Below, piece by piece: positions 22,639-55,399 of a stretch of 64,000 bases of DNA (positions are counted from its first letter, which is position 1; every line of letters starts with the position of its first letter). Where the stretch lies: assembly GCA_048013815.1 (NCBI GenBank), contig CM106586.1:18848001-18912000 (forward strand). Direction: 5' to 3'. The notes beneath the pieces were generated by a model, which was not told the DNA's origin, did no database searches, and worked only from the letters and a program-made list of their open reading frames with translations. Source of the stretch: Setoptus koraiensis (Eukaryota > Animalia > Arthropoda). Made by a program: the position numbers and the translations under genes.

Positions 22639-23382
22639 AGGGTGCGATTTGCATCCTGCTATTGCGTAATCCTTCCAACTCTGCGGTCAGGCTGCTCGCT
22701 TGGTCCACTGGCAACACCGCAAATCTCGCATCTCAGGCCATTATCGCCCTTCTCTCACCATCATCAATTCATAACACACACACACACACACATAATGCAT
22801 AATACACATAATACATTATGTAATGTTGTATTATGTGAGTGTGTGTGTGTGTGTGTTTGCTATTAATTGCCTGCAACAGTGCAACTGGGCAGGTGAATTC
22901 ACAGGCACCTGTAACGACACTCAAGGTGACCAGTGAATTTATCCGATCATGCTCATCATGATTTCACTGTATTGCGCAAGCCGGCTAATCATCGTCAGAT
23001 GGCACGCGCGTTACACTAGTTACTACCCTACTTAATTACTGGTCACAAAGCTCGCATTACTATTACGCAATATGCCAGCGATCTTTCGTTTTATTTTTAG
23101 CACAATTCATACCTCTGATATTGTGAGCAGTCAGAACAAACATCGATGCAAAGACAAACCTGTTAAATTTACATCACGCCAAAAAGGTAAATCAACTTTC
23201 TTTGCAAGCTCAACCACTGCCAATAACAATATAGCTGCACCTGTAAGGTGCTCCAAATTTCTTCATTATTCTCCTCGTGTCCATTCACTTCGACACCGAA
23301 TCAACTCTCATATTGCTCAAATCAAATAATGATGTGTGCCTTGCTTGTCTAATGGTCCACCATTCTAATCTTGTCGCTATTC

Positions 23383-23388
23383 TTTATT
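23383..23388 (-). terminator. Candidate polyadenylation signal AATAAA, copy A
   Basis: Plus-strand tttatt ~90 bp inside the duplication boundary; conserved at 49612-49617. Other candidates lie near 23847/50081. Confidence 0.3.
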
Positions 23389-23909
23389 CTTCTTTTCTGT
23401 CTAACACTTACTCACTCGTCAGAGACACTAAATGTAGATGCAGCAGCAGCTTTACATTTTCGTTTTATGTCTAACTACTTGTGGCCATTGTCATTTTTGT
23501 TATAGGTGGCCATGATTTCGTTAACAAACAAATAATCTTGTGTCGGAAAACTTTTCTGCATCAAAATCATCATGCTTGAATAAGTTGCTTCTATATACAG
23601 TTAGTGACCATGCAATGTTGCCTAGGATGAAAAATGTCTTCAGCTCGATTGTGGCTAGTCGTGAAATAAGACGAAACTTCAAAGTCATAAACGCATTACT
23701 ATATAGTTGTGTCTGAATATCCGATAGACTTATAGATCGATCGCAAGAAATTGGTGCATGCCGAGACATACAAGATTAGTCTCGAGATTCGACACTCGAA
23801 ACGGCGGAATTAGGGATTTGTTCTCTTGTGAATGCTAAATTCACTATTTATTTTTATGGTATTGCAACTCGAAATACTTTTCAAATACTCTTCTATCATT
23901 GATAATCAA

Positions 23910-23921
23910 TTAAATAAATAA
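23910..23921 (-). promoter_or_regulatory. AU-rich element (UUAUUUAUU nonamer) in putative 3' UTR of copy A
   Basis: Plus-strand taaataaataag; also present in copy B near 50145-50155. Confidence 0.3.
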
Positions 23922-24086
23922 GTAAGACCTACATCTTTTCATTTAGATTGGAATCCATTATATCTAATCAATCAATTCTGATTTTGTCATACAATTGTTG
24001 AGATGCTGAGAGGCTGTTTGTCTCATGGCAGCTAGCGTCATGCATAAGATACGATTCATTTTAGTCAACAGTTTTTTGCTATCTTC

Positions 24087-25756
24087 CTAAGATGAAGTAA
24101 TCTCGTGTTTTAGTTTTAGCGATTCTTTGCTCAATTCTCTGGGCGACTTGTGATAGTCAGTGGCTTCTGTATCGTTCTCTTCAGTGTCTGTATAGTCAGT
24201 GTGTTCATCCGGATCAGCGGTCATTCGAGAGGAATTGGTATTGTTGCAAAAAGCACTAGTCCTGTCGGTGTGATTATCAGTTTCACTGTTGATGAGATCA
24301 TTAGGCTCAAGCTTAGACTTTTTTCTATGTTGATCATCAGAATGTCCGTAATCAGGGCTATGCTCTATTGTTTTAGAAGATTTTGATAACTGCTCATCAG
24401 TATAGTCTTCGTCGTCATCGCTAACGGTGCGCTCCGGATATTGACGTTTTCTTGATGATCTATTGTTTTTACTTTGGGATGTCTTTGCAACCAGAGAGTC
24501 ATCATCAGTATCATCAATTAGTGGAAACATTTGACTAGTAGTAACCTCTGTCGTCCTTCGCTGGACAAGATTTTTGGCATAAATAAAGTCATCCTCGACA
24601 CGATCAGTCACCTCCTTGCTTCTGAGATCGTCGGCAATATCGATGTGTCCCTCTTCTGACACACTCGGAGACTTGTTGAGATTATCGCGCGATAAATTGT
24701 AAGAATTATTTAACTCTTTTTCGTTATTGCTTGGTGACTTTCTGCAATAGCTATCATCCCTATTGTTTTGTCTTCTGGCATATTTTGCAAGTTGCCGTTT
24801 TTGCGAATCGTTATCGGTCTCTAACCTGTTTAACTCTTCTTCTTGATCATCATCGCTCATCAGTTGGTCTCTGGAACCCGTAAATGATTGAGAATTTTTA
24901 TCGCCATCGGACAATTGCAATTGATGACGGCGTCGATCGTGGTTATCTTTCTGCAATGCACCACACTGATTAGATTGGTAAGAGGCGAACATCGAATTAG
25001 AATGCAGGTCGTGGTGTTGGTTGTGTTGCTGTTGATGTTGATGATGTTGTAGATGAAACGAATTTTGATGATGCACAGAATTGTTAATCAGTTGATTGAC
25101 TGTCATTTCATTAGTGAGGTGATGCTGGTTCATAATGGATGCTTTAGTTGGTATAGGTATGTCTAGATCTAGATTATCATCGTAGTTTGAGTCGTTTATA
25201 GACGACATTGGGGAACCGGGCTCGCTGCTACCCAGAGGTGGGTTGATGCGTTTCTCTTTTTGACGCCTGTTGCAAAACCATACTCTCACTACTTCTTTTT
25301 CCATACACAAATTATCCGCTAACATGGTGATATCTTCGCTAGTGGGTTTTGGGTTGGCGATGAAGGCCTTTTCAAGGGCTACTCTAACAGTTGTCTCAAT
25401 AGAGGTTCGTTTCTTTCGCCTTCTGCCAGCTATGGCTTCAGGTGTATGGTGGTGCAAATGATTTGGATGTAATGGATGATGGGGATGTGATATCATAGAT
25501 GATGATGCCGATGATGGCATTAATGTTGATTGGCTGTTAGTTGTCGGGTGTTGCACAATATTAGATACTGCCATAGCACTGTTCGTTGGCACGATAGAAT
25601 TGTCGGCATCTTGAAGCCAACGCTGGAGCAGAGGCTTCAATTTGCACATATTCTTGAAGCTGAGATTGAGTGCCTCAAATCTCGAGATCGTAGTCTGACT
25701 GAAATCGTTTCCATATAGTTTGCCCATCGCTAGTCCGACATCGCCCTGAGTAAAAC
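24087..25756 (-). CDS. nub: Copy A last exon (POU-specific 3' half, linker, homeodomain, acidic tail)
   Basis: Acceptor aataccag| at 25757; TAG at 24089-24087; 13 aa differences from copy B. Confidence 0.95.
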
Positions 25757-27531
25757 CTGGTATTGTTTTCAAGACAAATATTAATGACATGTGCTCAGCT
25801 GGATGTATCTAAAAAGAGATTTTTCACTTTTGTCTTGTTCACTTACCTAATTTGATGCGGCGTTGCTTGAATGTTTTAGCAAACTGCTCCAACTCTTCTA
25901 AATCTGTTGAGTCATCAAGATTGACGCTACTCTGTAGATTGACATTGGCGTGATTCGTTGTAGGGGTGCTAGAGACACGCTCTGAATGTTGTTGGTTGAT
26001 ATCACATAAATTGTCAACATCCAAAACACTGGATCGATTGAGATCAGGTGAATCATTATGATGGTATTCATCGTTGTTTGAATCCCTCAATGACAAATTA
26101 GATAAGGAGGAACTAGAACGTTGTTCTTTTTGTTGCCTTCCGAAAGTATCATTATCTAAATTGTTTTGATTTAAGCGATTATTGTTGCGATCATTATTCG
26201 ATTCAGAGTTCTGACGTTGCTTTTCATCATCATCTAACCTGGTGTTAACATAATCGTTGTATCTAGACTTAGTGTAGCGCTTCAATGTGGCCTTAGTTTT
26301 CTTTTTAGTTTCATTATTAGATGTCTCATTGTCGCTCAAATCACTATCTTTGTCAGATACGCTACTATGTTGATCACTGTGGTAATCATAAGTGCTATCA
26401 TGATTCTTATTATTCGAATACCTATCGACTGTTGTTCGAGACGTGTTTCGATTCACCATAGAAAGGTCTTTGCTTGTCTGGTGATGACGCAATTCGGTGT
26501 TTGTCTGATTGTTATTTCGTTGGTTCATTTGTTTCTGTTGTTGTAGTTGCATTGATCTCAATTGGCTAACCGTCGGCGACCCACTCTGAATTCCAATAAT
26601 TTGTCTAGAGCCCTGCGATATCTTTGCCGACGACTGACGTTGGCTGGATTGTTGATTGCCGTGGTGACTCGGTTGAACTTGGTTATGTTGGTGCTGCTGC
26701 TGGTGATGGCTATGATCGTGATTGTGTTGTTGTTGTTGCTGTTGTTGGATTTGATGATCCGAAATAGAGTTGATATTGTATGCACCTGATTGAGAGAGAC
26801 CAAGACTAGCTAATAGGGCAGGATTACTGAGTAATTGTTGTGCTACTTGAGGGGTGGGTATCGATTGTGCATTATTCTGGGGCGACATAAGCATCAGATT
26901 AGTTGGTGTTTGTGAGCCTAAGGCAGCCTGTTGAAGTTGCTGCTGGAAGGCGGCTTGCAATTGATTGTTCAACTGATCGAGATTGTGCTGTTGCAAAGAA
27001 GATAACAATAAATTTTGCATGTTATGTTGCTGGTTGGGGTCCATCGATGGTAGCTGTTGCTGATGATTTGGTTGCTGTTGTTGAAGCTGACTTAATATGT
27101 GAGCCTGGGGTCCGGTGGTGGCCGCTGCTGCTGCAGCAGCAGCAGCGGCTGCCACCACAAGAGGATTCTGTTGTTGTTGTTGTTGTTGAGAATTTGAATG
27201 TTTTTGTTGGGCAAAGCTCTGTAGGCTCTGTTGAATCAAATTTTGCTGTCGGAAATTGCGGATAGGAGATGAGAGAAAGGAAAACGTTAACGGTTGTAAA
27301 ATTTTGGTTATGTGTTGCATGAAGGGTCGCATCAAGCTACATAAATGTGCTGTGTCTTACCTGATTTTGCATCAGAAACTGAGCCTGAAGAGCTCCCGGT
27401 CGCATGAACATAAGAGGATTGAATGGTGTTTGCTGACCCCTATGTTGTTGCTGTTGTTGTTGTTGCTGCTGCTGTTGTTGCTGTTGCTGGAAGAACTGCT
27501 GCAGGGCGCCAACATTTGGACCCATGGCCAT
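24087..27531 (-). CDS. nub: Class II POU-domain transcription factor (nubbin/pdm-like), copy A, 5'-truncated duplicate; 3 coding exons, 1079 aa from MAMGP
   Basis: Exons 27361-27531, 25847-27245, 24087-25756 sum to 3240 nt. GT-AG introns at 27246-27360 (phase 0) and 25757-25846 (phase 1). POU-specific domain and homeodomain are identical in protein to copy B. Frame stays open upstream to 27789 without ATG. Confidence 0.88.
25847..27245 (-). CDS. nub: Copy A middle exon
   Basis: Acceptor ttccgacag|CAA AAT at 27246; donor TTA G|gtaagt at 25846. Confidence 0.92.
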
Positions 27532-27786
27532 CGCCGATGAGTTGTCTGCAATGGGCTTGTTATTGGGACCGGTGGTGGATAGGCCGATATTGGCGTTGAT
27601 TGTGGTGCGGTGAATGGGAGGATTGTGTGGAATTTTTAAGGTTTGTGTCGAATTTGAGAATTGTGTCGAATTGGAGGCTGTCGGTGACGATAATTGATTG
27701 TCGTTGTCTTGGCGATGATGCTGATTGTTCGATGACTCGGCCTGTTGTTTTACTAATTTTTGCAGGTTGGCGCCGCTTGTGTCGCA
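27361..27786 (-). CDS. nub: Copy A exon homologous to copy B exon 3 (coding certain only from ATG 27531)
   Basis: Donor AAT CAG|gtaag at 27360. Open frame from 27789. Possible phase-0 acceptor aataacag|TGC at 27787, but no upstream exon was found. Confidence 0.6.
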
Positions 27787-27978
27787 CTGTTATTATATTA
27801 TATATATTATATTATTATTACTATTATTGTCGAATTGTTGCTGGCTACGAGTTGCGAATTGGCTCGTTGTCGGAGTTGGTCACTCGGCTCAAATGAGTGG
27901 TTTGTCGTGCAATGTTGAGTGTGGTTAATTAATAATGTGTGTTAATTGGCTTGTTGAGTCATGATTGTGATGACGATG

Positions 27979-27986
27979 ATGCAAAT
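27979..27986 (+). promoter_or_regulatory. Octamer ATGCAAAT (POU class II binding site), conserved in both paralogues
   Basis: gatgatGCAAATTA context retained at 54308-54315 in otherwise diverged non-coding DNA. Confidence 0.5.
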
Positions 27987-28560
27987 TATTGTCGTTGGCG
28001 ATTTGATGTCTGATTTGAATTGCGTGCAACAACAATGATAATAATTGAATAATCACATTTGAGATAATGGCTGCTCACATTGGATCACATTGTATTGAGG
28101 CAATTGCTGTGTTGATAATTGGTTCGCTGGGACGCGCACAGTCTGCACTGCACTGCACAAACACGGCACAACGGCAGAACAAAACAACAAAACAACAAAA
28201 AATTCTATATGTTCTATCAAAAAGTTCTATACGGTGTTTGTACGGCACTCGTTGTCGAACATTGACACAATAGCAACGCGCACACTAATCGAATGGCATG
28301 TTATTCGATCGTGTGTCGTCAAGCGTCGTCGAACTATACGAGCCCAAACTCCTCCCCCTTTTAACAGGCTCACAAATGCGAGCACAACCAACAACTAATA
28401 ACACCAACAACTAACAACTAACGCGCACACTGTGCCACTCTTGTGAATCATTCACAGTGCAAGCATGTTTGCATGTGTGCAGACGCGCGCACAAAGCTAG
28501 CTACTAACTGAAGCCAGCCAGACACTTTTGCATGGCCCATCAGAGCAGAGACTCATCTGC

Positions 28561-28570
28561 GCGCATGCGC
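28561..28570. promoter_or_regulatory. GCGCATGCGC palindrome (NRF1/Erect-wing-type motif)
   Basis: Conserved at 54837-54846 while the sequence immediately to its left has diverged. Confidence 0.4.
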
Positions 28571-28630
28571 ACTCGCCATGCTCCACAGTGAGATGCGCAA
28601 TTGGGCAAATTCACAGTTGCCAATTGTATA

Positions 28631-29168
28631 ACACAATGGATCATCAACAAATCGTCAGTATAGTCTGAATAGTACTCAGTGAGTAGTCACCGTTACAGAC
28701 CAAGACTGCACTGATCAAAACTGAGTTATCAAAAGTTATCAAAATCCTCTAAAACAATAGAGCGCAGCCCTCATTACAAACACTCTGATGATCGACATGG
28801 AAAAAAATCCAATCTAATGATCTCATCAACAGTGAAACTGATGATCACACCGACGGGGCTACTGCTTTTTGAGAACTTTTTTTTTTGAGAACAGAAGCCA
28901 CTGACTATCACAAGTCGCCCAGAGAATTGAGCAGAGAATCGCTAAAACTAAAACACGAGATTGCTTCATCTCAAGGAAATAGCAGAAATGAATCATATCT
29001 TATATCATATCGCTTGACGCTAGCTGCCACGAGACGAACAGCCTGTGTGCATCTCGACTTGTGACATGTATGACAAAATTGATCACAATTGATTGATTAG
29101 ATAGAATGGATTGCAATCTAAATGAAAAGATGTAGGTCTCACTTATTTATCTAATTGATTATCAATGA
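28631..29168 (+). pseudogene. Inverted, decayed fragment of the POU gene 3' end (C-terminal coding region plus proximal 3' UTR)
   Basis: Aligns to the reverse complement of ~23896-24465. Encodes KSSKTIERSPHYKHSDD and [27 protein letters not shown], followed by UTR match atctaaatgaaaagatgtaggtctcacttattt. Has a frameshift near 28810, TGA at 28870-28872 and a large internal deletion. Confidence 0.9.
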
Positions 29169-30850
29169 TTCAATGAATTGAATGATCTGAATCTCTCGCT
29201 TCCATTTATTTTTGGTTCTTGCTCGACATTTTTTTTCTTCACTTCTCGTCACTCACACCCTCTCCCGCGACCCGTGCCCCTTTTCTGCCACATCTCCCCA
29301 TGAAGGCCATCACTGCCTAGAAATTCACTTCCGTATCGAGACGAGAATTCTTTTTCTACAAGCTCAAAACTGTATTGGATTTTCGAAGGGGGTCGCGTGT
29401 GCTTTTGCACTCCATCTACGCACACACTCACACCAGCACGCATATGAATTGTGCGCTCGCGCATCGACAAACCGAGGGGGAAACCGAATGGAATTTCAAC
29501 ACACAGAAGGGGGTCACGTGTTTTTCTTGTCTCACTTAGGGCCCCTAAGGTAGGCGAGTGCCGTTCCAAAAATAAACGCTCAATTCAACGAGAGAATTTT
29601 TAATTTTTCGTGCTTCATTTGGCTGTTGCGATAGTCGGATATTTGGGCAAGTTATCGCGATCAATCTGGCAGCTTGCAATATCAGAATATTCAATATAGT
29701 GACGCGTTTATGATTGTTGAAGTTTGTTTGTGGCCACTTGTTACTAACTAGTCGCTCATGACAGACTCGTGCTGGTTGTTTTGTTGTTTTGTGTGTACAA
29801 GCCACGACAAGTGTTGTTTGTCAGTGTGTGTGTGTGTTTATTTGTGCCACAAATACAAATTATCTCTCATGTGTGTGCCTGCTGAATCTTAATTACTGCA
29901 TCACATTGATTGTGACTCGCAATTTGCGCCGGAGACTCATCAATGTTTTTGGTTGTTGCTGTTGTTGTTGCTGTTGTTGTTGCTGCTGTTGTTGCTGTCG
30001 TTGTTGGCATTGTTCGCGGCCCATTAAGAGCAACGCGGCGGCTGTCACGCCGGCGCTGACCACTATCAGTAGTGGCCATTCAACAGTGACTGGTGCGGTC
30101 GACAGTGCGCCGCAACCACTGCCCAGCAAGCTAGTGCAACAATTATACAATTACACAGCAACAAGTTGCCTATATATATATATACATGTAATGTCGACTT
30201 GCACAACAGTGGGCCATTAATTAATGTCATTGTGCACTCGACCATTATGCAACTCATGGCGCGGCTCCGATTGCTGACTGGCGGCTGCTCGTCGGACGCT
30301 GCTCCGCTGTTTCGCGCTGCTTCGCACTGCCTCGCTCTCGCACTGCCTCGGTCTCGCACTGGCTCGGTCTGGCCCGACGAGTCAGCGATGCCGCAATGGT
30401 GCCAGTTTGCTCATTTAGTCGCACTCTAACGACGCCACCAGCACTAATTAGTGATAGTCACAATTAGTGACGCTCACAAAGCGCCCAAAACAGCACGCAA
30501 TCACGTTCCTGCCTTTCCCTTGGCGCTGCATGGCCGCCGATGTTGTGCGGTTATGTCACTGCGCCACACACTTGCTGCCACTTTGCCACAGTCACTTGGA
30601 GTAACACTAAACACACTGTAAACACGGCCACAAACAAATGATGCCAACAACCACTTGTTGCCGGCCCTCATTTGTTGCCGGCCGTCATTTGCGGGCCGGC
30701 AAGTTGGCGAGTTTGCGAGCTGGCGAGTTTGCCAATGGCGAGCGCCGGCAAGTGCCAAATGATGACTGACATCGCCGGTCATGACAGACAAGCTCGTGTT
30801 TGTTTGTGCGCGTTCACTTTCAAATTTGTTTGTTCGCGCACACAAACCGT

Positions 30851-40124: not shown

Positions 40125-43120
40125 GTGATAGTAATAATGATAATACGGCCTAATACCAACATTGCCGGCCCATGCGGCTTAGCTATGATATCGTCGTCGG
40201 TATCGGCCAATGCCGCTGCCGCTGCCGATTGCGATTGCAAAACCACTATTTAGGCTCTAAATTGCTGCTTCTCTTCGGCCAGCTCCTCTCCTCCTTCGGC
40301 CAATCTGCTAACCAAGTCGGCAGGTGCCACGCGCTCATGTATTTTTTAGCAAGATAGATATTCGGCGTGCCGCTTACTCACTTTTGTGCCGCTTCCTTTT
40401 TCGCAAATATACCTACTGCCGCCACTAACTACGCTGGCCAGTCACCAGCCAGGAATTTCCATTGCGCTGGCCGAATGGATTCTCTTTAAATCCATTCGGA
40501 CGGCTCTCTTGGTTGGCTCTCTTGGTTCGCCGGCCATCATTATCGGCCAGATCAGCAACACATTCGCTGAGAAGGCATGAGAATAAGAAGAAACAGACGG
40601 CGATAGTAATGATCAATCCAATCAGCATATATTCATCATCATGGTCAGATATTCATCGTCAGTCAGTCAGTCAGCCAGTCAGTCAGCCGGTCGTGGTTGT
40701 AGTAGGAATTAATCGCAGCGCAAACTATTGAATATTAAAGACATGCTAATGATTGATCACATTGACCTCATCGGCGGCGCGTCCTGCAGGAAAGCGAGCC
40801 GCCAACACAAGCACTGCAAGGTTGAACGTGTTGGTCACTTGTTGTTGTCGTCGTTGTTGCTGTCGTTGTTGCCGTTGTTGCTGTCGTTGTTGGTGCTGCT
40901 GCTGTTGTCGTTGTTGTCGTTGTTGTCGTTGTTGTTGTTGTCGTTGTTGTTGCTGTTGTTGCTGTCCAAGGAGGTGGTGCGTACGGACTGTTTTCCAGCA
41001 CAGTTCGCACGCAGGTAGTGCAGTTGTTGCTATTGCTGTTGCTGTTGTTGTCAATCATCAATCATTTTAACAGCTTCGGCAACTCTAATGAGACTTCAAA
41101 CGATTGATCGGGCCAATGATTCCCTTTCGGAGCCAACAACAACAGCTACAAATTGTGTCTTCTTCTCATTCTTCTTCCCCGACTCCCAGTCTCGCTTATA
41201 ATAATCAAAAAGATTTAAAAATTCTCTCGTCCTCATCAGATTGATTAGCATGTTGATCCCGCTTCACGTCCACCACTTGTTGGCACTCGTTGGCAGTGGT
41301 GCCCGTTTGCACACTTGCCGGCGATTCAAATCAAAAAATGGAATAAAATAAAGTAAAATGAAATAAAATGAAATGAAATGAAATGAAATAAAATAAAACT
41401 GGCAAAAATGCCAATTCTCATCCTGTCTGGCCAGACCGCCAACACAAACAAATTGACTCGTTTCATTGTCTCTTTGGGGCTTGATGAAAGAAAATAAACA
41501 ATAATAATGCCGATAATTCATGTAGATGGTTGTGGTGCCAAGATCAATCGATTACACCTCTCGTCGTTGTGATTATTGTTAGTTATTATCCTATATTATG
41601 CATTGAGATTATCGCATTTATCGCATTCATTTGTTGAAATGATCAACAATAATAATTCCTTCTTTTCGCTGCTTCTTACGCTACACAAAATTAACATGTC
41701 CTTTTGTAGTAATAAAAATAAACACAACACAAACAACTATTGTTGGCTTACAGTTACTGGCAGTCTCTTACAAATAAAGATGTTGGCTGGCTAGCTGAAA
41801 GTGGTTGCTTGCCAGTCACTATCTCTCTTGTTACCGGGTCTTGTTGCGGTTAAAGCGTTGCTGTTGTGCAAATCGCAAATAGTGAAGAAAATTTAAATTG
41901 ATTGGCTTCAATCAATTAATTCAAATGTAAGATTCCACTAGAATTATCACCTCGACAACAATAACAACAGCAATCATGCAAACAAATGATGAAGACTATT
42001 CTCTGTGTGTGTGTGTGTCTCTCTCTTTTCTTGTTGATCCATCCATCTATCTCTTTATATGTGTCTCTTTGTTGGCCACTAATTCGCCTGCTTGTTAGTT
42101 AATATTCTCATTTCTATCTAACAACTTGCCGAGGAAACACTACGAAAACAACAACAACCTGTTACAACTAGATTGATGATTAGGCTGGCCTTTGTGTTGC
42201 AGTGGGCATGTTGTTGTATATGTTCAAATTCAAATGTATGTATGCTCTTTCATTATCATCAATTATTGAAAACATATTCTAAACATATGCCTCTCTTGAT
42301 CGACCATGCTCGTTGTGGCTCTGGCGCTCGACCCAACTAACAAGTTGGTCATTTCATCATCGACCGCATGACCATTGTGCAAATGAGCGAGCGATACCAA
42401 TCGACCAAGCAACAATGGCCGATTATCTTCGACACATCTGTGTTAATTATATCCAATTTGGCAAGCTTATAGAGAGCTTATAAGAGAGAGAAAGAGAGAT
42501 AGCTGGCCCAAAGTGAAATCTACTCTCTAGCTCGTTAATAAGGCCTGAAAGTTCAGTGAGTTCCTTCGGAGTTGTTAATGTTGCCCTGCGTTTGCTGGGC
42601 CAACTCGCCAGATGGCGCTTGCCTTACTAAAAACCAATTCCTGTCTCCTCTGTCACTCCGATAATCGCGTGCTTATTCACCTGTTCACCTGTTCACCGTG
42701 ATGATAATAATAATAGTAATGGTAATATTAATAAGTATAACACACATACACAATGATAGAATGATCATGATAGAAATGATAGAAAACGGTGTAAAGGATG
42801 GATCGATCGGCAACAACAGACCGACGGCCGGTGTTCACATGGTGCATTATCGGCGAGCCATGAATAAGGGCTTCGTTGGTGGCCTATGACTGTTTCAATT
42901 AGAGTCACACACAGCCAGACACACACGAGGGGGTCGGCATGGTCTTTGAGACCAATCAACCTGCTGCTGCTGCCGCTGCCGATCGTATATCATATAATCA
43001 CGTTGAAAGGGATGATATAACACACTTCATTGATTACGCAATCAATGGTTTCTTCTTCTTCCACATTATAATGACCTCATCATCGATTAGTTGTATTCCA
43101 TATTTCTCGAGTCTTTATTC

Positions 43121-47389: not shown

Positions 47390-48511
47390 ATGTTTGCCGC
47401 AGCTAGCGAGTATATGTTATTAAGTTTAAATTTCTTTGAGATCATCATAAACCTGCTATATCTGGCCTTGTATTTTGCCAATATGAGTTTCGGTGTGGTA
47501 TTAAACTCCTCCAACTCCAATTCAAATTCAAAATACAGCAATCAGAATTCCAACAACCACAATAGTGAGGCTCAAGCACTAGACCAACACGACCACAACG
47601 ATGACGACTATCTCAAATACCACAATAGGAGCTCTGCTTGGCTCACCATTATTGACGACAAACCCGAACCCAATCCGACGCACACCTTGGGTCATCCCGG
47701 CAAAAACGGCAAAAAAATGACCACATTTGCCAATGACCTAGTTGACCACAGCACAACTCTAGCCGTCAGAGGCAAGCCAACAAACAACAGCGCTGAGACA
47801 TCTGTCAAGAAATCTTTTTACAAAACACTACCCAAGGCTTTTGGCAAACGACACGGAGAGGACAGAGTGAAACACAGTAATATTGTCTATGGAGGTTCTC
47901 TTGGCGGTAGTCAAGAATCGCTCAAGTCCGGACAAACAACTTCTTCCTCGTCATCGACATCGTCGTTGCACAACATAGCACCTAATAGACCACCTCCGCC
48001 ACCACCAATAAATAGAAGAAGCAGCGGCGTGAGTACATTCAATGGTATACCACCGCCAACTACAATTACAAGCCACCTAGCAGCAACAAGTGGAGGAGCA
48101 CCCAGCCGAGAGCAGATGTTTATATCGTTGCTGACTTCTATGTTTGGATTCTTCTCAGCCAAGTTTCATCTCACCTGGCTTCTGCTATTCTATTCAATCT
48201 ACATAATGACCGGACTTGTTCTGTGGCTCTACAATCATGCCTTCTTCTATCGACGTGTGAGACATTTAAATTATCCAGAACAAGCGGATTACAATCGGCG
48301 CTCATCAGCTGCCCCCAAGGCGGTTGGTTTAGTTGTTTCGGCACCCAGCCAATCGCTAGGACTTTCATCGGCTTTAGACCTAACTAGAGTGTGCGACAAT
48401 ATGTACGATGAGGTCCATTTGCAAATGTTAGCTTCGAGACGCGATGTGGTCGACATTGGTCTGAAACTAGTACTGATCATGAGTGCCTACGATCTTTCTA
48501 ACAGTCTATAA
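47390..48511 (+). CDS. Unknown multi-pass membrane protein, 373 aa, apparently single coding exon; start uncertain (Met1 or Met9)
   Basis: Long non-repetitive ORF. Hydrophobic segments LLSLNFFEIIINLLYLALYFANMSFGVV, MFISLLTSMFGFFSA, LTWLLLFYSIYIMTGLVLWLY and IGLKLVLIMSAY. Possible upstream intron from donor ttttag|gtaag at 47081 to acceptor tttgccgcag| at 47402. AATAAA at 48986. Confidence 0.75.
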   Translation: MFAAASEYMLLSLNFFEIIINLLYLALYFANMSFGVVLNSSNSNSNSKYSNQNSNNHNSEAQALDQHDHNDDDYLKYHNRSSAWLTIIDDKPEPNPTHTLGHPGKNGKKMTTFANDLVDHSTTLAVRGKPTNNSAETSVKKSFYKTLPKAFGKRHGEDRVKHSNIVYGGSLGGSQESLKSGQTTSSSSSTSSLHNIAPNRPPPPPPINRRSSGVSTFNGIPPPTTITSHLAATSGGAPSREQMFISLLTSMFGFFSAKFHLTWLLLFYSIYIMTGLVLWLYNHAFFYRRVRHLNYPEQADYNRRSSAAPKAVGLVVSAPSQSLGLSSALDLTRVCDNMYDEVHLQMLASRRDVVDIGLKLVLIMSAYDLSNSL

Positions 48512-50320
48512 TTGTTATGTGATTAGTTCGATTGCTATCAATTTAGTGGTGATTCCATGAAAGCCAACTCCGCAACAATAATAACCATTCTATCAATGCA
48601 ACAACCAAACAAGCAATCGCAATTACATGCACAACTAACTTCATGACACACATTTGCACACACAATAAGTGGTCTATTCATATTTCAAGCGCTGTTCCTA
48701 ATACTATATAGTGCCCTTTGCTGAGTAGATTGCTCTGATGATCTCTAGTTTTTTTTTGAATCTTATAATATTGAATAGAATCAAAAGCGAAAACGGACAC
48801 AAAGCAAACCATGATTGTGAGCTAGTGAGAAAGACTCATCTCAAAACGACGCTAAACAGAAATGACACACCACTTAAAGAAAATTGTAGACGCCAAATAA
48901 CAAGTGCGAGTATAGACAAGTTTGAATTAGTTCAAACTAACCATTCGTGCACATTCTGACACACAGCGTCTTCTTCACTTCTTCGAATAAAAGAACTAAC
49001 TAGAGCTATTGTTCGTATCCAACCAAAGAGCAGTTGTTGTTTGTAGCTAAATCGTGAATGATGATTCCATTCAGCAAAACATCAAGAGGTTACATGTTTC
49101 AACTTATCACTGAGTGTATGTGTTTTGTCGTTTTTATCACCGTTTTTGTTGTGTCGGTGTGTCATGATTATTATTATTTTCATGGAATATGGATTGATTG
49201 AATAATAAGCTGATCACCTCTAAGCTTCGCCGTGGCTTGTTAGAGATGCCGAGAGGCAATCCGACGGGCAAAAATTTGCCCAGGTAATAGGCAAATAATA
49301 GATTTAGCATGTGTCAGTTGTTGACGCTCGACTCATGTCGGTAACATGAATAACAAAAATTATGATGCCAAACTTCTATTGCCAACTGCTGCACATAGAA
49401 TTGATTCTTTCTATATTCCATTTATTTTTACCTTGCTCACTTGTTGTTCATATTCCAATCGAATGACAACGACAGTCGCATACTTTGCACTACAAACAAT
49501 AAACTTCTATTGGGCATTGAATCGCCGAATCAACTCTCATATTGCTCAAATCAAATAATGATGTGTGCCTTGCTTGTCAAATGGTCCACCATTCTAATCT
49601 TGTCGCTATTCTTTATTCTTCTTTTCTGTCTAACACTTACTCACTCGTCAGAGACACTAAATGTAGATGCAGCAGCAGCTTTACATTTTCGTTTTATGTC
49701 TAACTACTTGTGGCCATTGTCATTTTTGTTATAGGTGGCCATGATTCTGTTAACAAACAAATAATCTTGTGTCGGAAAACTTTTCTGCATCAAAATCATG
49801 CTTGAATAAGTTGCTTCTATATACAGTTAGTGATCATGCAATGTTGCATAGGATGAAAAATGTCTTCATCTCGATTGTGGCTAGTCGTGAACTAAGACAA
49901 AACTTCAAAGTCATAAACGCATTACTATATAGTTGTGTCTGAATATCCGATAAGCTTATAGATCGATCGCGAGAACTTCGTGTATGCATAGGCATACTAG
50001 ATTAGTCTTGAGATACGATACTCTCGGAACAACGAAATTAAGGATTTATTCTCTTGTACTTGTGATTGTTAAATTCACCGTTTATTTTTGTGGTATTGCA
50101 ACTTGATATACTTTTTAAATACTCTTCTATCATTGATAATCAATTAAATAAATAAGTAAGACCTACATCTTTTCATTTAGATTGGAATCCATTCTATCTA
50201 ATCAATCAATTCTGATTTTGTCATACAATTGTTGAGATGCTGAGAGGCTGTTTGTCTCATGGCAGCTAGCGTCAAGCTTAAGATACAATTTATTTTAGCC
50301 AATAGCTTTCTGGTATTTTC

Positions 50321-51990
50321 CTAAGATGAAGTAATCTCGTGTTTTAGTTTTAGCGATTCCTTGCTCAATTCTCTGGGCGACTTGTGATAGTCAGTGGCTT
50401 CTGTATCATTCTCTTCAGTGTCTGTATAGTCAGTGTGTTCATCCGGATCAGCGATCATTCGAGAGGAATTGGTATTGTTGCAAAAAGCACTAGTCCTGTC
50501 GGTGTGATTATCAGTTTCACTGTTGATGAGATCATTAGGCTCAAGCTTGGACTTTTTTCTATGTTGATCATCAGAATGTCCGTAATCAGGGCTATGCTCT
50601 ATTGTTTTAGAAGATTTTGATAACTGCTCATCAGTATAGTCTTCGTCGTCATCGCTAACGGTGCGCTCCGGATATTGACGTTTTCTTGATGATCTATTGT
50701 TTTTACTTTGGGATGTCTTTGCAACCAGAGAGTCATCATCAGTATCATCAATTAGTGGAAACATTTGACTAGTAGTAACCTCTGTCGTCCTTCGCTGGAC
50801 AAGATTTTTGGCATAAATAAAGTCATCCTCGACACGATCAGTCACCTCCTTGCTTCTGAGATCGTCGGCAATATCGATGTGTCCCTCTTCTGACACACTC
50901 GGAGACTTGTTGAGATTATCGCGCGATAAATTGTAAGAATTATTTAACTCTTTTTCGTTATTGCTTGGTGACTTTCTGCAATAGCTATCATCCCTATCGT
51001 TTTGTCTTCTGGCATATTTTGCAAGTTGCCGTTTTTGCGAATCGTTATCGGTCTCTAACCTGTCCAACTCTTCATCTTGATCATCATCACTCATCAGTTG
51101 GTTTCTGGAACCCGAAAATGATTGAGAATTTTTCTCGCCATCGGACAATTGTAACTGATGACGGCGTTGATCATAATTATCTTTCTGCAATGCACCACAC
51201 TGATTAGATTGGTAAGAGGCGAACATCGAATTAGAATGCAGGTCGTGGTGTTGGTTGTGTTGCTGTTGATGTTGATGATGTTGTAAATGAAACGAATTTT
51301 GATGATGCACAGAATTGTTAATCAGTTGATTGACTGTCATGCCATTAGTGTGGTGATGCTGGTTCATAATGGATGCTTTAGTTGGTATAGGTATGTCTAG
51401 ATCTAAATTATCATCGTAGTTTGAGTCGTTTATAGACGACATTGGGGAACCGGGTTCGCTGCTACCCAGAGGCGGGTTGATGCGTTTCTCTTTTTGACGC
51501 CTGTTGCAAAACCATACTCTCACTACTTCTTTTTCCATACACAAATTATCCGCTAACATGGTGATATCTTCGCTAGTGGGTTTTGGGTTGGCGATGAAGG
51601 CCTTTTCAAGGGCTACTCTAACAGTTGTCTCAATAGAGGTTCGTTTCTTTCGCCTTCTACCAGCTATGGCTTCAGGTGTATGGTGGTGCAAATGATTTGG
51701 ATGTAATGGATGATGGGGATGTGATATCATAGATGATGATGCCGATGACGACATTAATGTTGATTGGCTGTTAGTTGTCGGGTGTTGCACAATATTAGAT
51801 ACCGCCATAGCACTGTTCGTTGACACGATAGAATTGTCGGCATCTTGAAGCCAACGCTGGAGCAGAGGCTTCAATTTGCACATATTCTTGAAGCTGAGAT
51901 TGAGTGCCTCAAATCTCGAGATCGTAGTCTGACTGAAATCGTTTCCATATAGTTTGCCCATCGCTAGTCCGACATCGCCCTGAGTAAAAC
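50321..51990 (-). CDS. nub: Copy B last exon: 3' half of POU-specific domain, linker, homeodomain, acidic C-terminal tail
   Basis: Acceptor aataccag|GT TTT ACT CAG with AG at 51992-51991; TAG at 50323-50321. Confidence 0.95.
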
Positions 51991-54900
51991 CTGGTATTGT
52001 TTTCAAGACAAATATTAATGACATGTGCTCAGCTGGATGTATCTAAAAAGAGATTTTTCACTTTTGTCTTGTTCACTTACCTAATTTGATGCGGCGTTGC
52101 TTGAATGTTTTAGCAAACTGCTCCAACTCTTCTAAATCTGTTGAGTCATCAAGATTGACGCTACTCTGTAGATTGACATTGGCGTGATTCGTTGTAGGGG
52201 TGCTAGAGACACGCTCTGAATGTTGTTGGTTGATATCACATAAATTGTCAACATCCAAAACACTGGATCGATTGAGATCAGGTGAATCATTATGATGGTA
52301 TTCATCGTTGTTTGAATCCCTCAATGACAAATTAGATAAGGAGGAACTAGAACGTTGTTCTTTTTGTTGCCTTCCGAAAGTATCATTATCTAAATTGTTT
52401 TGATTTAAGCGATTATTGTTGCGATCATTATTCAATTCAGAGTTCTGACGTTGTTTTTCATCATCATCTAACCTGGTGTTAACATAATCGTTGTATCTAG
52501 ACTTAGTGTAGCGCTTCAATGTGGCCTTAGTTTTCTTTTTGGTTTCATTATTAGATGTCTCATTGTCGCTCAAATCACTATCTTTGTCAGATACGCTACT
52601 ATGTTGATCACTGTGGTAATCATAAGTGCTATCATGATTCTTATTATTAGAGTACCTGTCGACTGTTGTTCGAGACGTGTTTCGATTCACCTTAGAAAGG
52701 TCTTTGCTTGTCTGGTGATGACGCAATTCGGTGTTTGTCTGATTGTTATTTCGTTGGTTCATTTGTTTCTGTTGTTGTAGTTGCATTGATCTCAACTGGC
52801 TAACCGTCGGCGACCCACTCTGAATTCCGGTACTTTGTCTAGATCCTTGCGATATCTTTGCCGACGACTGACGTTGGTTGGATTGTTGATTGCCGTGGTG
52901 ACTCGGTTGAACTTGGTTATGTTGGTGCTGCTGCTGGTGATGGCTGTGATTGTTATTGTGTTGTTGTTGTTGCTGTTGTTGGATTTGTTGATCCGAAATA
53001 GAGTTGAACAAGTTATGTTGGGGTAGACCCAAGGCACTGATTGGGTTAAGTTGAGGCAGTTGCTGTTTATTATTGTATCCACCTGATTGAGAGAGACCAA
53101 GACTAGCTAATAGGGCAGGATTACTGAGTAATTGTTGTGCTACTTGAGGGGTAGGTACCGGTTGTGCATTATTCTGGGGCGACATAAGCAGTAGATTAGT
53201 TGGTGCCTGTGAGCCCAATGCAGCCTGCTGAAGCTGTTGTTGGAACGCGGCTTGGAATTGATTGTTCAACTGATCGAGATTGTGCTGTTGCAAAGAAGAT
53301 AACAATAAATTTTGCATGTTATGTTGCTGGTTGGGGTCCATCGATGGTAGCTGTTGCTGATGATTTGGTTGCTGTTGTTGAAGCTGACTTAATATGTGAG
53401 CCTGGGGTCCGGTGGTGGCCGCTGCTGCCGCAGCAGCAGCAGCGGCTGCCACCACGAGAGGATTCTGTGGTTGTTGAGAATTTGAATGTTTTTGTTGGGC
53501 AAAGCTCTGTAGGCTTTGTTGAATCAAATTTTGCTGCAGAAAATTCTAGATAGGAGAGAAAGAAATTAACGTTAACGCTGTAAGCACCGAACATATTTTG
53601 AAAGAAGAATTAAAGTAGCTGCATTTGTTTTGTAGCTTACCTGATTTTGCATCAAAAATTGAGCTTGAAGAGCTCCCGGTCGCATGAACATAAGAGGATT
53701 GAATGGTGTTTGCTGACCCCTATGTTGTTGCTGTTGTTGCTGCTGCTGCTGCTGTTGTTGTTGTTGCTGTTGCTGGAAGAACTGCTGCAAGGCACCAACA
53801 TTCGGACCCATGGCCATCACCGATGAGTTGTCTGCAATGGGGTTGTTATTGAGACCAGTAGTGGAGAGGCCAATATTTGGTGTTGATTGGGGTCCTGAAT
53901 TGGAGGATTGTGTCGAATTAGAGGTTGTCGGTGCGGATACGGTTGCCGGCGACGAAGGGCTAGTGGCAATAGATAATTGATTGTTGTTGTCCTCGCGATG
54001 ATGTTGATTGTTTGATGACTTAGTGTGTTGATTTACTAAGTTGCTGGTTGTGGCTGCCGCTGACGATAATGCGCTGCAATTATTATTATTATTGTTGTTG
54101 GCTACAAGTTGCGAAACGGCTAGACTGTTGTTGGCTTGTTGTCGAAGTTGGTCACTCAGCTAAATTGTTGTTTGTGATTAGAGTGTCAAGTGTGATTAAG
54201 GGGGGTCGATGGTATTAGAGGCGATGAGAGTTAAATGTTAATTAATAATTGTGTTAATTGATGTGCATGTGCGTTAACTCATGACGACGGCCATTATGAT
54301 GATGATGATGCAAATTACTATCATTAGCGATCAATTGCAATGTGTAATTGCATGCAACAACACTAATAATAATTGAATAATCATAGTAGCGATAATAGCT
54401 CCTCATCACATTGTATTGAGAGAACGCTGTTATTATTGATATTAATTGAGTCGCTTTTCACCGCCGGGAGTCATGTTTCTCGGCTGTACAGTCTGCAAAC
54501 AAAACGGCAGAACAAAACAACAAAAAATTCTATATGTTCTATACGTTTGTACGCCATTCGTTGTCGAACATTGACACAATAGCGACACACACACACACAC
54601 ACACACTCGACTAATGGAATGGCATGTTATTCGATCATTTCGTCAACCGTCGTCGAACTATACGAGCCCAGACTCCTCCCCCTCGGGCTCACAATTGCGA
54701 GCACAACAACTAACGTGCACACTGTGCCCCTCTTGTGTGTGCGTATGTATTGCGAGACGCGCACACAAAGCTAGCTAGTAACCGAAGCCAGCCAGACACT
54801 TTTGCATGCCACCAACTTGGTTATCTGTATAACTGGGCGCATGCGCACTCGCCTCGTTCCACAGTGAGGGTCGCAGGGGGGGGGGAGTCGCATTAGTCAG

Positions 54901-55399
54901 AGTCACACATACAAAAAAACTATTGGCCCGTTCAAACTTGCCGCCAAACACCAGACCACAATCAATTCCACTTACCTGTTGGTGCTCCTGGCGCTGCTGT
55001 GGGTTTTGTTGTTGCGCCACGGCGAAATTGCTCTGCAACATTTGCATTTGTTGCTGGCTAGAAGCGACCCACTGCCGTTCGTTGGTTCGGTTCAATATTC
55101 CAATGTCCACCCATTCAATTAGTATTTAATTAGCAAGCAAATTATCGGGCAAGAGTATGAGAAAAGAGAAGCGGACAATTAATGAGCTGTGGATCGATTG
55201 GTGCAATAGCAGGCCAAAATGAAACCAAACGGAAGTGATGCCAATAGTGATGAATTGTTACGACACTCACATGAGCCAGTTGATTCAGGCTGAGACCATT
55301 TGCTGCCGCCGTCGACAACATTTGTGCCGTGGCTGCCGCCGCCTCCTGATCCGTGTTCGGGCCCGCTTGATCCATTTTAGATGATAAACGATGCTGCAT
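50321..55399 (-). CDS. nub: Class II POU-domain transcription factor (nubbin/pdm-like), copy B, probable full-length parent; 5 predicted coding exons, ~1280 aa
   Basis: POU-specific domain [20 protein letters not shown]|[43 protein letters not shown] and homeodomain [21 protein letters not shown]...[16 protein letters not shown] are class II (Oct-1/Nub) type. [13 protein letters not shown] resembles the Nub/Pdm linker end. Exons 55271-55399, 54976-55053, 53641-54159, 52081-53533, 50321-51990 join through GT-AG introns in phases 0,0,0,1 and sum to 3849 nt (divisible by 3). Family call is strong; the 5' exons are less certain. Confidence 0.88.
52081..53533 (-). CDS. nub: Copy B exon 4: Gln/Ala/Asn-rich region and first half of POU-specific domain
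   Basis: Acceptor ttttctgcag|CAA AAT at 53534; donor AAA TTA G|gtaagt at 52080 (phase 1); open throughout. Confidence 0.93.
53641..54159 (-). CDS. nub: Copy B exon 3: [11 protein letters not shown]...SVMAMGP...Q17...MQNQ
   Basis: Donor AAT CAG|gtaag at 53640. Frame is open from 54159, preceded by aatttag (phase-0 acceptor). Peptide partly conserved in copy A. Confidence 0.8.
54308..54315 (+). promoter_or_regulatory. Octamer ATGCAAAT in predicted intron 2 of copy B
   Basis: Homologous to 27979-27986. Confidence 0.5.
54837..54846. promoter_or_regulatory. GCGCATGCGC palindrome (NRF1/Erect-wing-type motif)
   Basis: Homologous to 28561-28570. Confidence 0.4.
54976..55053 (-). CDS. nub: Copy B predicted exon 2: [26 protein letters not shown]
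   Basis: Perfect donor CAA CAG|gtaagt at 54975 (phase 0). Acceptor cttctagccag| at 55054; an alternative phase-0 AG would start the exon at 55071. Gln-rich like the rest of the protein. Confidence 0.6.
55271..55399 (-). CDS. nub: Copy B predicted first coding exon: [43 protein letters not shown]
   Basis: Donor GCT CAT|gtgagt at 55270 (phase 0). In-frame TGA 9 nt upstream of ATG 55399. The second ATG (55375) has a strong TCTAAAATGG context and may be the real start. Confidence 0.6.

Follow-up and report, generated by a model that had tools for sequence, protein, structure and literature searches.

Can a copy of a gene that lacks the first exons of its parent survive as a working gene, and does its origin divide the long and short products of the parent between two loci? 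The question is raised by a stretch of 64,000 nucleotides (nt) of the genome of Setoptus koraiensis (assembly GCA_048013815.1, contig CM106586.1, positions 18,848,001 to 18,912,000 of the forward strand), hereafter called the window, which contains two direct copies, A and B, of a class II POU gene, both on the minus strand. The assembly, of an eriophyoid mite, consists of 48.8 Mb in two contigs. An earlier note, made from the letters of the window alone, had proposed that copy A, cut at its 5' side by a breakpoint lying inside an intron, is a stand-alone gene for a short isoform, driven by an internal promoter, and that copy B provides the long form. The reading favoured by the present analysis, and regarded as reasonably probable, is that copy A, a partial duplicate truncated at the 5' side, works as a gene and is transcribed from an element which it inherited with the copied DNA.

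Two copies of a class II POU gene

The two duplicated blocks were delimited as follows:

23296..28636, minus strand: copy A, whole duplicated block (blastn self-comparison, alignment, boundary sequence)
49525..54912, minus strand: copy B, duplicated block including most of intron 2 (blastn, junction reading, Pfam, alignment)

By blastn, positions 23296-26773 match 49525-53007 with 97.0% identity over 3486 columns, and 26774-27777 match 53071-54061 with 85.8%; beyond 27777/54061 the matches become patchy, with identities of 79-100%, and reach 28592/54868, a faint similarity being still detected, by alignment and blastn, up to about 28636/54912. The boundary of copy A is abrupt at the 3' side (23296) and falls at about 28592-28636 at the 5' side. 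The homology ends inside intron 2 of copy B, 63-107 nt downstream of the intron 2 donor: the earlier note had placed this end within the predicted intron 54160-54975, and both blastn and alignment bear it out. After 26773, 63 nt of copy B (53007-53070 region) have no counterpart in copy A. The small intron at 27246-27360 is only 58% identical to that of copy B, a value indicating that the duplication is, as far as divergence can date it, old; the intron within the POU domain is identical at 90 positions out of 90. This last identity, together with the 97% found in the 3' part, presumably reflects later gene conversion. The boundary of the stretch so converted coincides with the 63-nt indel, the 5' part being 58-86% identical.

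Two similar copies might, in principle, be an artefact of assembly, either uncollapsed haplotypes or a misjoin, the more so as over 100,000 wild mites were pooled for the probable source assembly, in which heterozygosity is 1.1% (PMC11920263). However, the 5' parts of the copies differ by 14-40%, in addition to the 63-nt indel; 20 kb separate the copies, and no match was detected among the flanks of either side; moreover, copy A features a junction of its own with an inverted fragment. DNA contigs, obtained from short reads of runs of separate studies (X1 to X3), span 28204-28920 and 28898-29942 with 0-1 differences: since they bridge junctions private to copy A, an artefact is ruled out for any practical purpose, and two real loci exist, as the earlier note had assumed. 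Within this assembly, the intron block retained in copy A matches two places only, one in each copy.

The following gene models were obtained for copy A:

27361..27531, minus strand: first coding exon part, with ATG at 27529-27531, 57 codons (translation)
27246..27360, minus strand: intron of 115 nt, spliced out (joint 27245->27361 in a contig of run X4, ends CT..AC)
25847..27245, minus strand: middle exon, rich in glutamine (Gln), whose end encodes residues 1-20 of the POU-specific domain (junctions, Pfam)
25757..25846, minus strand: phase-1 intron of 90 nt, within the POU-specific domain (GT..AG junctions)
24087..25756, minus strand: last exon, with the C-terminal part of the POU-specific domain, linker, homeodomain, long tail and stop codon (Pfam, junction sequence)

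and for copy B:

50321-51990, minus strand: last exon
51991-52080, minus strand: intron within the POU domain
52081-53533, minus strand: middle exon
53534-53640, minus strand: intron
53641-54159, minus strand: exon 3
54160..54975, minus strand: intron 2, 816 nt, with GTAAGT donor and AG acceptor, reading frame kept
54976..55071, minus strand: exon 2, 32 codons, GTAAGT donor, absent from copy A (tblastn to paralogue C)
55271..55399, minus strand: exon 1, coding part from ATG 55399, 43 codons, GTGAGT donor, absent from copy A (tblastn to paralogue C)

The open reading frame (ORF) of copy A, summed from exon-wise translations after removal of the introns of 115 and 90 nt, amounts to 57 + 466 + 1 split Gly codon + 555 = 1079 codons, and all exon frames are open, in agreement with the intact ORF of 1079 codons from 27531 that had been originally described. 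Searches were likewise run exon by exon. In both copies, the POU-specific domain (Pfam PF00157) is recognized in the last exon (E 3.7e-24, profile 22-72) and at the end of the preceding one (E 4.5e-4, profile 2-20), and the homeodomain (PF00046, E 4.4e-18) at residues 113-169 of the last exon, downstream of the linker. Of the named proteins found in the 120 best matches, nearly all belong to POU class 2 or are called nubbin or pdm2, with 59-68% identity over the domain; matches to the remaining POU genes of this genome are far weaker. On these similarities, copies A and B are classified as class II POU genes, of the nubbin/Oct-1 type. The position of the POU intron is also shared by arthropod POU2 exon ORFs.

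Similarity to known proteins is found within the domain. The N-termini of 15 arthropod POU2 proteins gave no match to this locus outside the POU domain, and short motifs of the N-terminal and Gln-rich exons were not found in the best 120 protein matches. Three word-based protein searches, started from the last exon, from the tail alone (no match) and from a 205-residue piece of the domain, revealed no eriophyoid orthologue, and returned only generic arthropod POU2 domains, with 59-68% identity.

Upstream exons and a third paralogue

In exon 3 of copy B, 114 open codons precede the methionine (Met) shared with copy A, each of the other two frames containing about 6 stops or more; an upstream start is needed. 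Exons 1 and 2 were first recognized by reading frames upstream of copy B and of a third paralogue, C, located some 58 kb downstream of copy A, on the same strand (G000:C2:18812251-18817200). Paralogue C has the POU intron in the same position as copies A and B, and N-terminal exons 1-2 as in copy B: in tblastn comparisons of B with C, exon 1 is matched with E 2e-8 and exon 2 with E 1e-6, and the contexts of their junctions match, so that exons 1-2 of copy B can be taken as real. A recognizable counterpart of the exon bearing the internal Met in A and B was not found in C. Paralogue C is older than the A/B pair, and the locus is a cluster of three POU2 genes.

Upstream of copy A the situation is different. 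When 27501-49500 was searched by tblastn with exons 1-2 of copy B, only poly-Gln repeats were returned (at about 40850-40970), and the best specific score was 18 bits, while the same exons were detected in paralogue C: the absence of a counterpart upstream of copy A, already noticed from the sequence, stands. Similarly, a tblastx comparison of the upstream regions of the three genes resulted in CAG/poly-Gln noise only, and the DNA of exons 1-2 of copy B has no match in this assembly other than itself. Being common to B and C, and lacking in A, exons 1-2 identify copy A as the derived, truncated copy. With a breakpoint inside the parent gene, and the upstream exons of the parent missing, it is a 5'-truncated partial duplicate, and copy B can code for about 189 N-terminal residues more than copy A.

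Expression of copies A and B

Transcripts specific to copy A were looked for, and were found as A-specific contigs in a public, RNA-like run, X4, which covers 14 of 30 bins, all of them exonic, and leaves uncovered both the POU intron and positions 27455-30400. A contig of 523 letters shows 0 differences to copy A over 26826-27111, where A and B are 86% alike; a joint in the same run, with a depth of 5.47, equal to that of the 523-letter contig, omits exactly 27246-27360, with GT..AG ends on the minus strand. Two further contigs also match copy A with 0 differences: one (26758-26855) crosses the junction of the 63-nt deletion of A, and the other (24775-25043) carries the letters of A at six sites distinguishing the two copies. 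As an A-specific contig skips the predicted intron, copy A is transcribed and spliced. Contigs with the letters of B were found as well, at 24623-24811, 25381-25647 and 26032-26486 (window coordinates of copy A, checked by alignment), indicating that both copies are expressed. One X4 contig mixes the letter of A at 25425 with the letters of B at 25515-25589, and may be either a conversion variant of the population or a chimeric contig.

Selection on copy A

Substitutions were evaluated by Nei-Gojobori counts of A against B, within one assembly, yielding the numbers of synonymous and non-synonymous changes, the synonymous divergence (dS) and the ratio of non-synonymous to synonymous divergence (dN/dS):

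Exon from ATG: 8 synonymous, 0 non-synonymous, dS 0.325, dN/dS 0
Whole unconverted 5' coding part: 21 synonymous, 7 non-synonymous, dS 0.18, dN/dS 0.08
3' part: 26.5 synonymous, 21.5 non-synonymous, dS 0.053, dN/dS 0.195

In the 5' part, the 7 non-synonymous changes seen compare with about 43 expected if one lineage, that of copy A, were neutral. The counts indicate that copy A is under purifying selection, and that the constraint starts at the ATG at 27531.

A different explanation would regard copy A as a dying sequence, devoid of function, with a frame kept open only by repeated conversion from copy B. Conversion has indeed been active, as seen in the 97% identity of the 3.5 kb at the 3' side and in the POU intron, but it does not account for the unconverted 5' part (dS 0.18-0.33), where 21 synonymous changes stand against 7 non-synonymous ones and the indels are all in frame, nor for a copy that is transcribed and correctly spliced; the explanation is thus very improbable. 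A plain pseudogene was rejected as well, in view of frames open over 1079 codons, of coding indels in frame and of dN/dS values of 0.08-0.2.

Decay upstream of the ATG

Upstream of the ATG copy A has a different history, concentrated in the following segment:

27532..27889, minus strand: former coding part of ancestral exon 3, decayed in copy A (alignment, indel count)

Over this segment copy A is 74% identical to copy B. The AG of the old acceptor persists at 27888-27889, and the exon would begin at 27887; as this is 356 nt before the ATG, an exon starting there would not share the frame of the ORF. At 27790-27795, within an AT tract, copy A reads TAATAA where copy B has AAT repeats, the AAT run of B having been turned into the AT tract by insertions of 5 and 19 nt in A. 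The alignment agrees on both counts with the earlier note, which had described an acceptor out of frame and an AAT run decayed into an AT tract with TAA stops. Indels change in character at the ATG: 7 out of 8 in 27532-27890 are not multiples of three, while all three of those found from 27531 onward are (63, 9 and 6 nt). The Met at 27531 is the only start left for a protein of copy A, and the exons of the long form are gone.

Retained intron block and start of transcription

Upstream of the decayed segment, copy A still carries a large part of an intron of its parent:

27890..28636, minus strand: retained 3' part of parent intron 2 (alignment; motif search)

Within 27968-28592, 11 conserved islands of 16-54 nt are 91-100% identical to copy B; none is found in the small intron at 27246-27360. 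Both copies hold a perfect octamer site, at 27979-27986 in A and at 54308 in B, and the sequence GCGCATGCGC occurs in the window at two sites only, 28561-28570 (A) and 54837 (B). The islands were not found in the intron of paralogue C by sensitive blastn, and no Rfam family matches the retained block of copy A; a single sub-threshold Rfam match, on a GT repeat in copy B, was taken as due to chance. Upstream of the start codon no ATG is present, in any frame, over 431 nt in A and 451 nt in B, and many are found farther upstream.

For such islands to be preserved, either both copies must be constrained or conversion must have acted over short tracts. Copy B, which keeps the same Met in the same context, as well as the islands, probably still uses the same intronic element, either as an internal promoter or as an intronic enhancer. 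As the islands are shared by the intron of B, a full split of isoforms between A and B becomes less likely, and the data suggest that an arrangement in which A makes the short form only, and B the long and perhaps also the short one, is likelier. Of the division proposed in the earlier note, the part concerning copy A, a stand-alone and short-only gene, was upheld, while the loss of the short form from B is unsupported, given the Met and the islands that B has kept.

The octamer ATGCAAAT is found 21 times in the window (1-64000), against 9.5 +/- 3.1 occurrences expected from shuffled sequences, and octamer positions were also seen upstream of copy C. The excess suggests that the members of the POU2 cluster might regulate themselves or each other.

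Transcription of copy A could also have been acquired anew: a promoter, or a non-coding first exon, located within 29170-49500 would run or splice into the acceptor at 27888-27889, copy A being, here too, functional, short and translated from 27531. This is a serious, if on balance unlikely, alternative. The AG of the old acceptor does survive in copy A, the leader from 27887 to the ATG contains no ATG, and 5'-truncated human duplicates often acquire new upstream promoters or exons (PMC6169893). On the other hand, X4 leaves 27455-30400 uncovered while covering the coding exons of A, an indication which is weak, the depth being only 2-7; the conserved islands, present in A as well as in B, suggest a shared, inherited element; and a transcript running through 27962-28640 would contain many upstream ATGs.

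Transcription from an inherited element, which we prefer, has to face a number of observations that weigh against it. X4 is not on record as RNA, its nature being deduced from the exon-only cover and from the contig that skips an intron. No X4 contig lies upstream of 27463, a position within a CAG repeat at which the last one stops; with a depth of 2-7, this lack of cover is a weak pointer to a short leader, and an end at 27463 is compatible with a leader, with an upstream non-coding exon or with a new coding exon of copy A. The lack of ATGs in the stretch before the start codon departs only slightly from chance expectation (P about 0.03-0.1), and the islands could be kept alike by short gene conversion rather than by selection. 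Finally, copy A has 85 open codons in frame before the ATG (27786-27531), and these codons include the two best-conserved patches, in which most differences between A and B are synonymous.

The last observation bears on a further possibility, the acquisition by copy A of a new coding N-terminus: an upstream exon would be spliced to a new acceptor directly following the TAATAA, the CAG at about 27787-27789, and the 85 open codons would be translated. The CAG is suitably placed, after an AT-rich tract, and the alignment of the two patches, just mentioned, would fit in with translation. Four non-triplet indels (1, 2, 2 and 2 nt), however, shift the frame of A relative to B within the stretch; another frame has one stop only, an open frame being not unusual in a T-poor sequence; and no upstream exon is present in X4. 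The synonymous bias of the patches could be explained by constraint on copy B itself, together with inheritance. A new N-terminus is accordingly held to be improbable, much more so than a new promoter.

Proposed origin of copy A

Under the reading preferred here, of a truncated copy driven by an inherited element, the following series of events may be envisaged. A piece of 5.3 kb of the parent, in the lineage of copy B, with one end inside intron 2 and the other 0.8 kb beyond the stop codon, would have been copied about 26 kb downstream, along with a small inverted piece of the 3' end of the gene. The two N-terminal coding exons and the upstream promoter of the parent were not carried along, and about 114 codons of exon 3 upstream of the internal Met have decayed in copy A into a leader free of ATGs. 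Transcription would be driven by an element inherited within the block formed by the retained part of intron 2 and the former exon, an element with an octamer site that the intron of copy B would still retain, and would probably start between about 27960 and the ATG. Translation from 27531 would yield a protein of 1079 residues, with complete POU-specific domain and homeodomain.

The inverted piece adjoins the breakpoint of copy A head to head:

28633..29169, plus strand: decayed inverted copy of the last ~100 codons and ~190 nt of the 3' untranslated region (blastn, ~85% to A and B)

It is equidistant from A and B, with 6 and 7 diagnostic sites, respectively, in a three-way alignment. This arrangement suggests that the inverted copy and the A block derive from one complex copying event, perhaps involving template switching.

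A broader and more speculative scenario, which we consider doubtful, assumes that the ancestral eriophyoid POU2 gene had two promoters, like nub; that partial duplication turned the short form into a separate gene, under the control of the inherited octamer promoter; and that the three clustered paralogues cross-regulate through octamers. That the ancestor may have made both forms is hinted at, indirectly, by the lack of ATGs before the internal Met in both copies and by the islands of the intron. If true, long and short forms would have been separated by a breakpoint, not by slow complementary mutation, in parallel to the single-gene solution of the fly.

Other features of the surrounding DNA

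A CAG/CAA repeat, coding for poly-Gln and about 120-170 nt long, is located at 40824-40990 and 1649-1813, as well as outside the window, and recurs in the 136-kb region; the copies at 40847-40964 and at G000:C2:18832685-18832802 are 83% identical. Between the POU copies lies an intact ORF of 373 codons (47390-48511, plus strand), with only a sub-threshold hint of a tetraspanin (Pfam E 0.007) and no match in the Atlas features search.

Comparison with known systems

A tree built on the domain region groups the three mite paralogues in a clade of their own, with 99/95 support. Since they do so, their duplication appears to be independent of that of the fly, keeping in mind that conversion can inflate the clustering of paralogues. 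Another acariform mite, Halotydeus destructor, has two class II POU proteins (P0014 and P0031), encoded on one 874-kb contig and forming their own clade (100/97): to judge from the tree, this duplication, too, is independent and lineage-specific.

What the locus offers is a very compact animal genome keeping a separate, selected, short-only gene beside a gene for the long form and an older paralogue. The survival of a partial duplicate as a working gene is seen here in a clean and dated case. Knock-down directed at single paralogues could tell the roles of the long and short forms apart, with no need for isoform-specific tricks.

The closest comparison is with Drosophila nub, for which the precedent cited in the earlier note is as stated: two promoters produce a long (Nub-PB) and a short (Nub-PD) form with identical POU domains (PMC5851638). 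The pdm2 and pdm3 genes are organized like nub, internal promoters giving rise to N-terminally short class II POU proteins (PMC5851638). Class II POU factors act through forms differing at the N-terminus, which can oppose each other, as is the case for Nub-PB and Nub-PD in the fly gut. Fly and mite have in common a class II POU gene, long and short proteins that share an identical C-terminal POU domain and differ only N-terminally, and clustered paralogues. They differ in that both forms derive from one gene in the fly, whereas in the mite the short form is hard-wired in a separate, truncated gene; the N-terminal difference amounts, in the mite, to about 189 residues, and the mite proteins are not known to antagonize each other in function.

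The mechanism, by which a short form becomes a gene of its own through 5' truncation, is not unprecedented, being known from other systems. Partition of isoforms between duplicates has been documented, for example for the fungal SKI7/HBS1 pair (PMC3597508), where a gene with two forms was replaced by two genes with one form each, following duplication of the whole gene and complementary losses; in copy A, in contrast, the long form was removed by the duplication breakpoint itself, and a complementary loss in copy B is doubtful. Closer in structure are 5'-truncated human segmental duplicates, such as the FRMPD2 paralogue and others, which are transcribed from internal or newly acquired promoters (PMC6169893): as in copy A, the ancestral promoter and upstream exons were lost, and the shortened copy is still transcribed. 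The human duplicates, however, are very recent, and for most of them a function is doubtful, while copy A of the mite is old, dS reaching 0.33, and is clearly subject to purifying selection.

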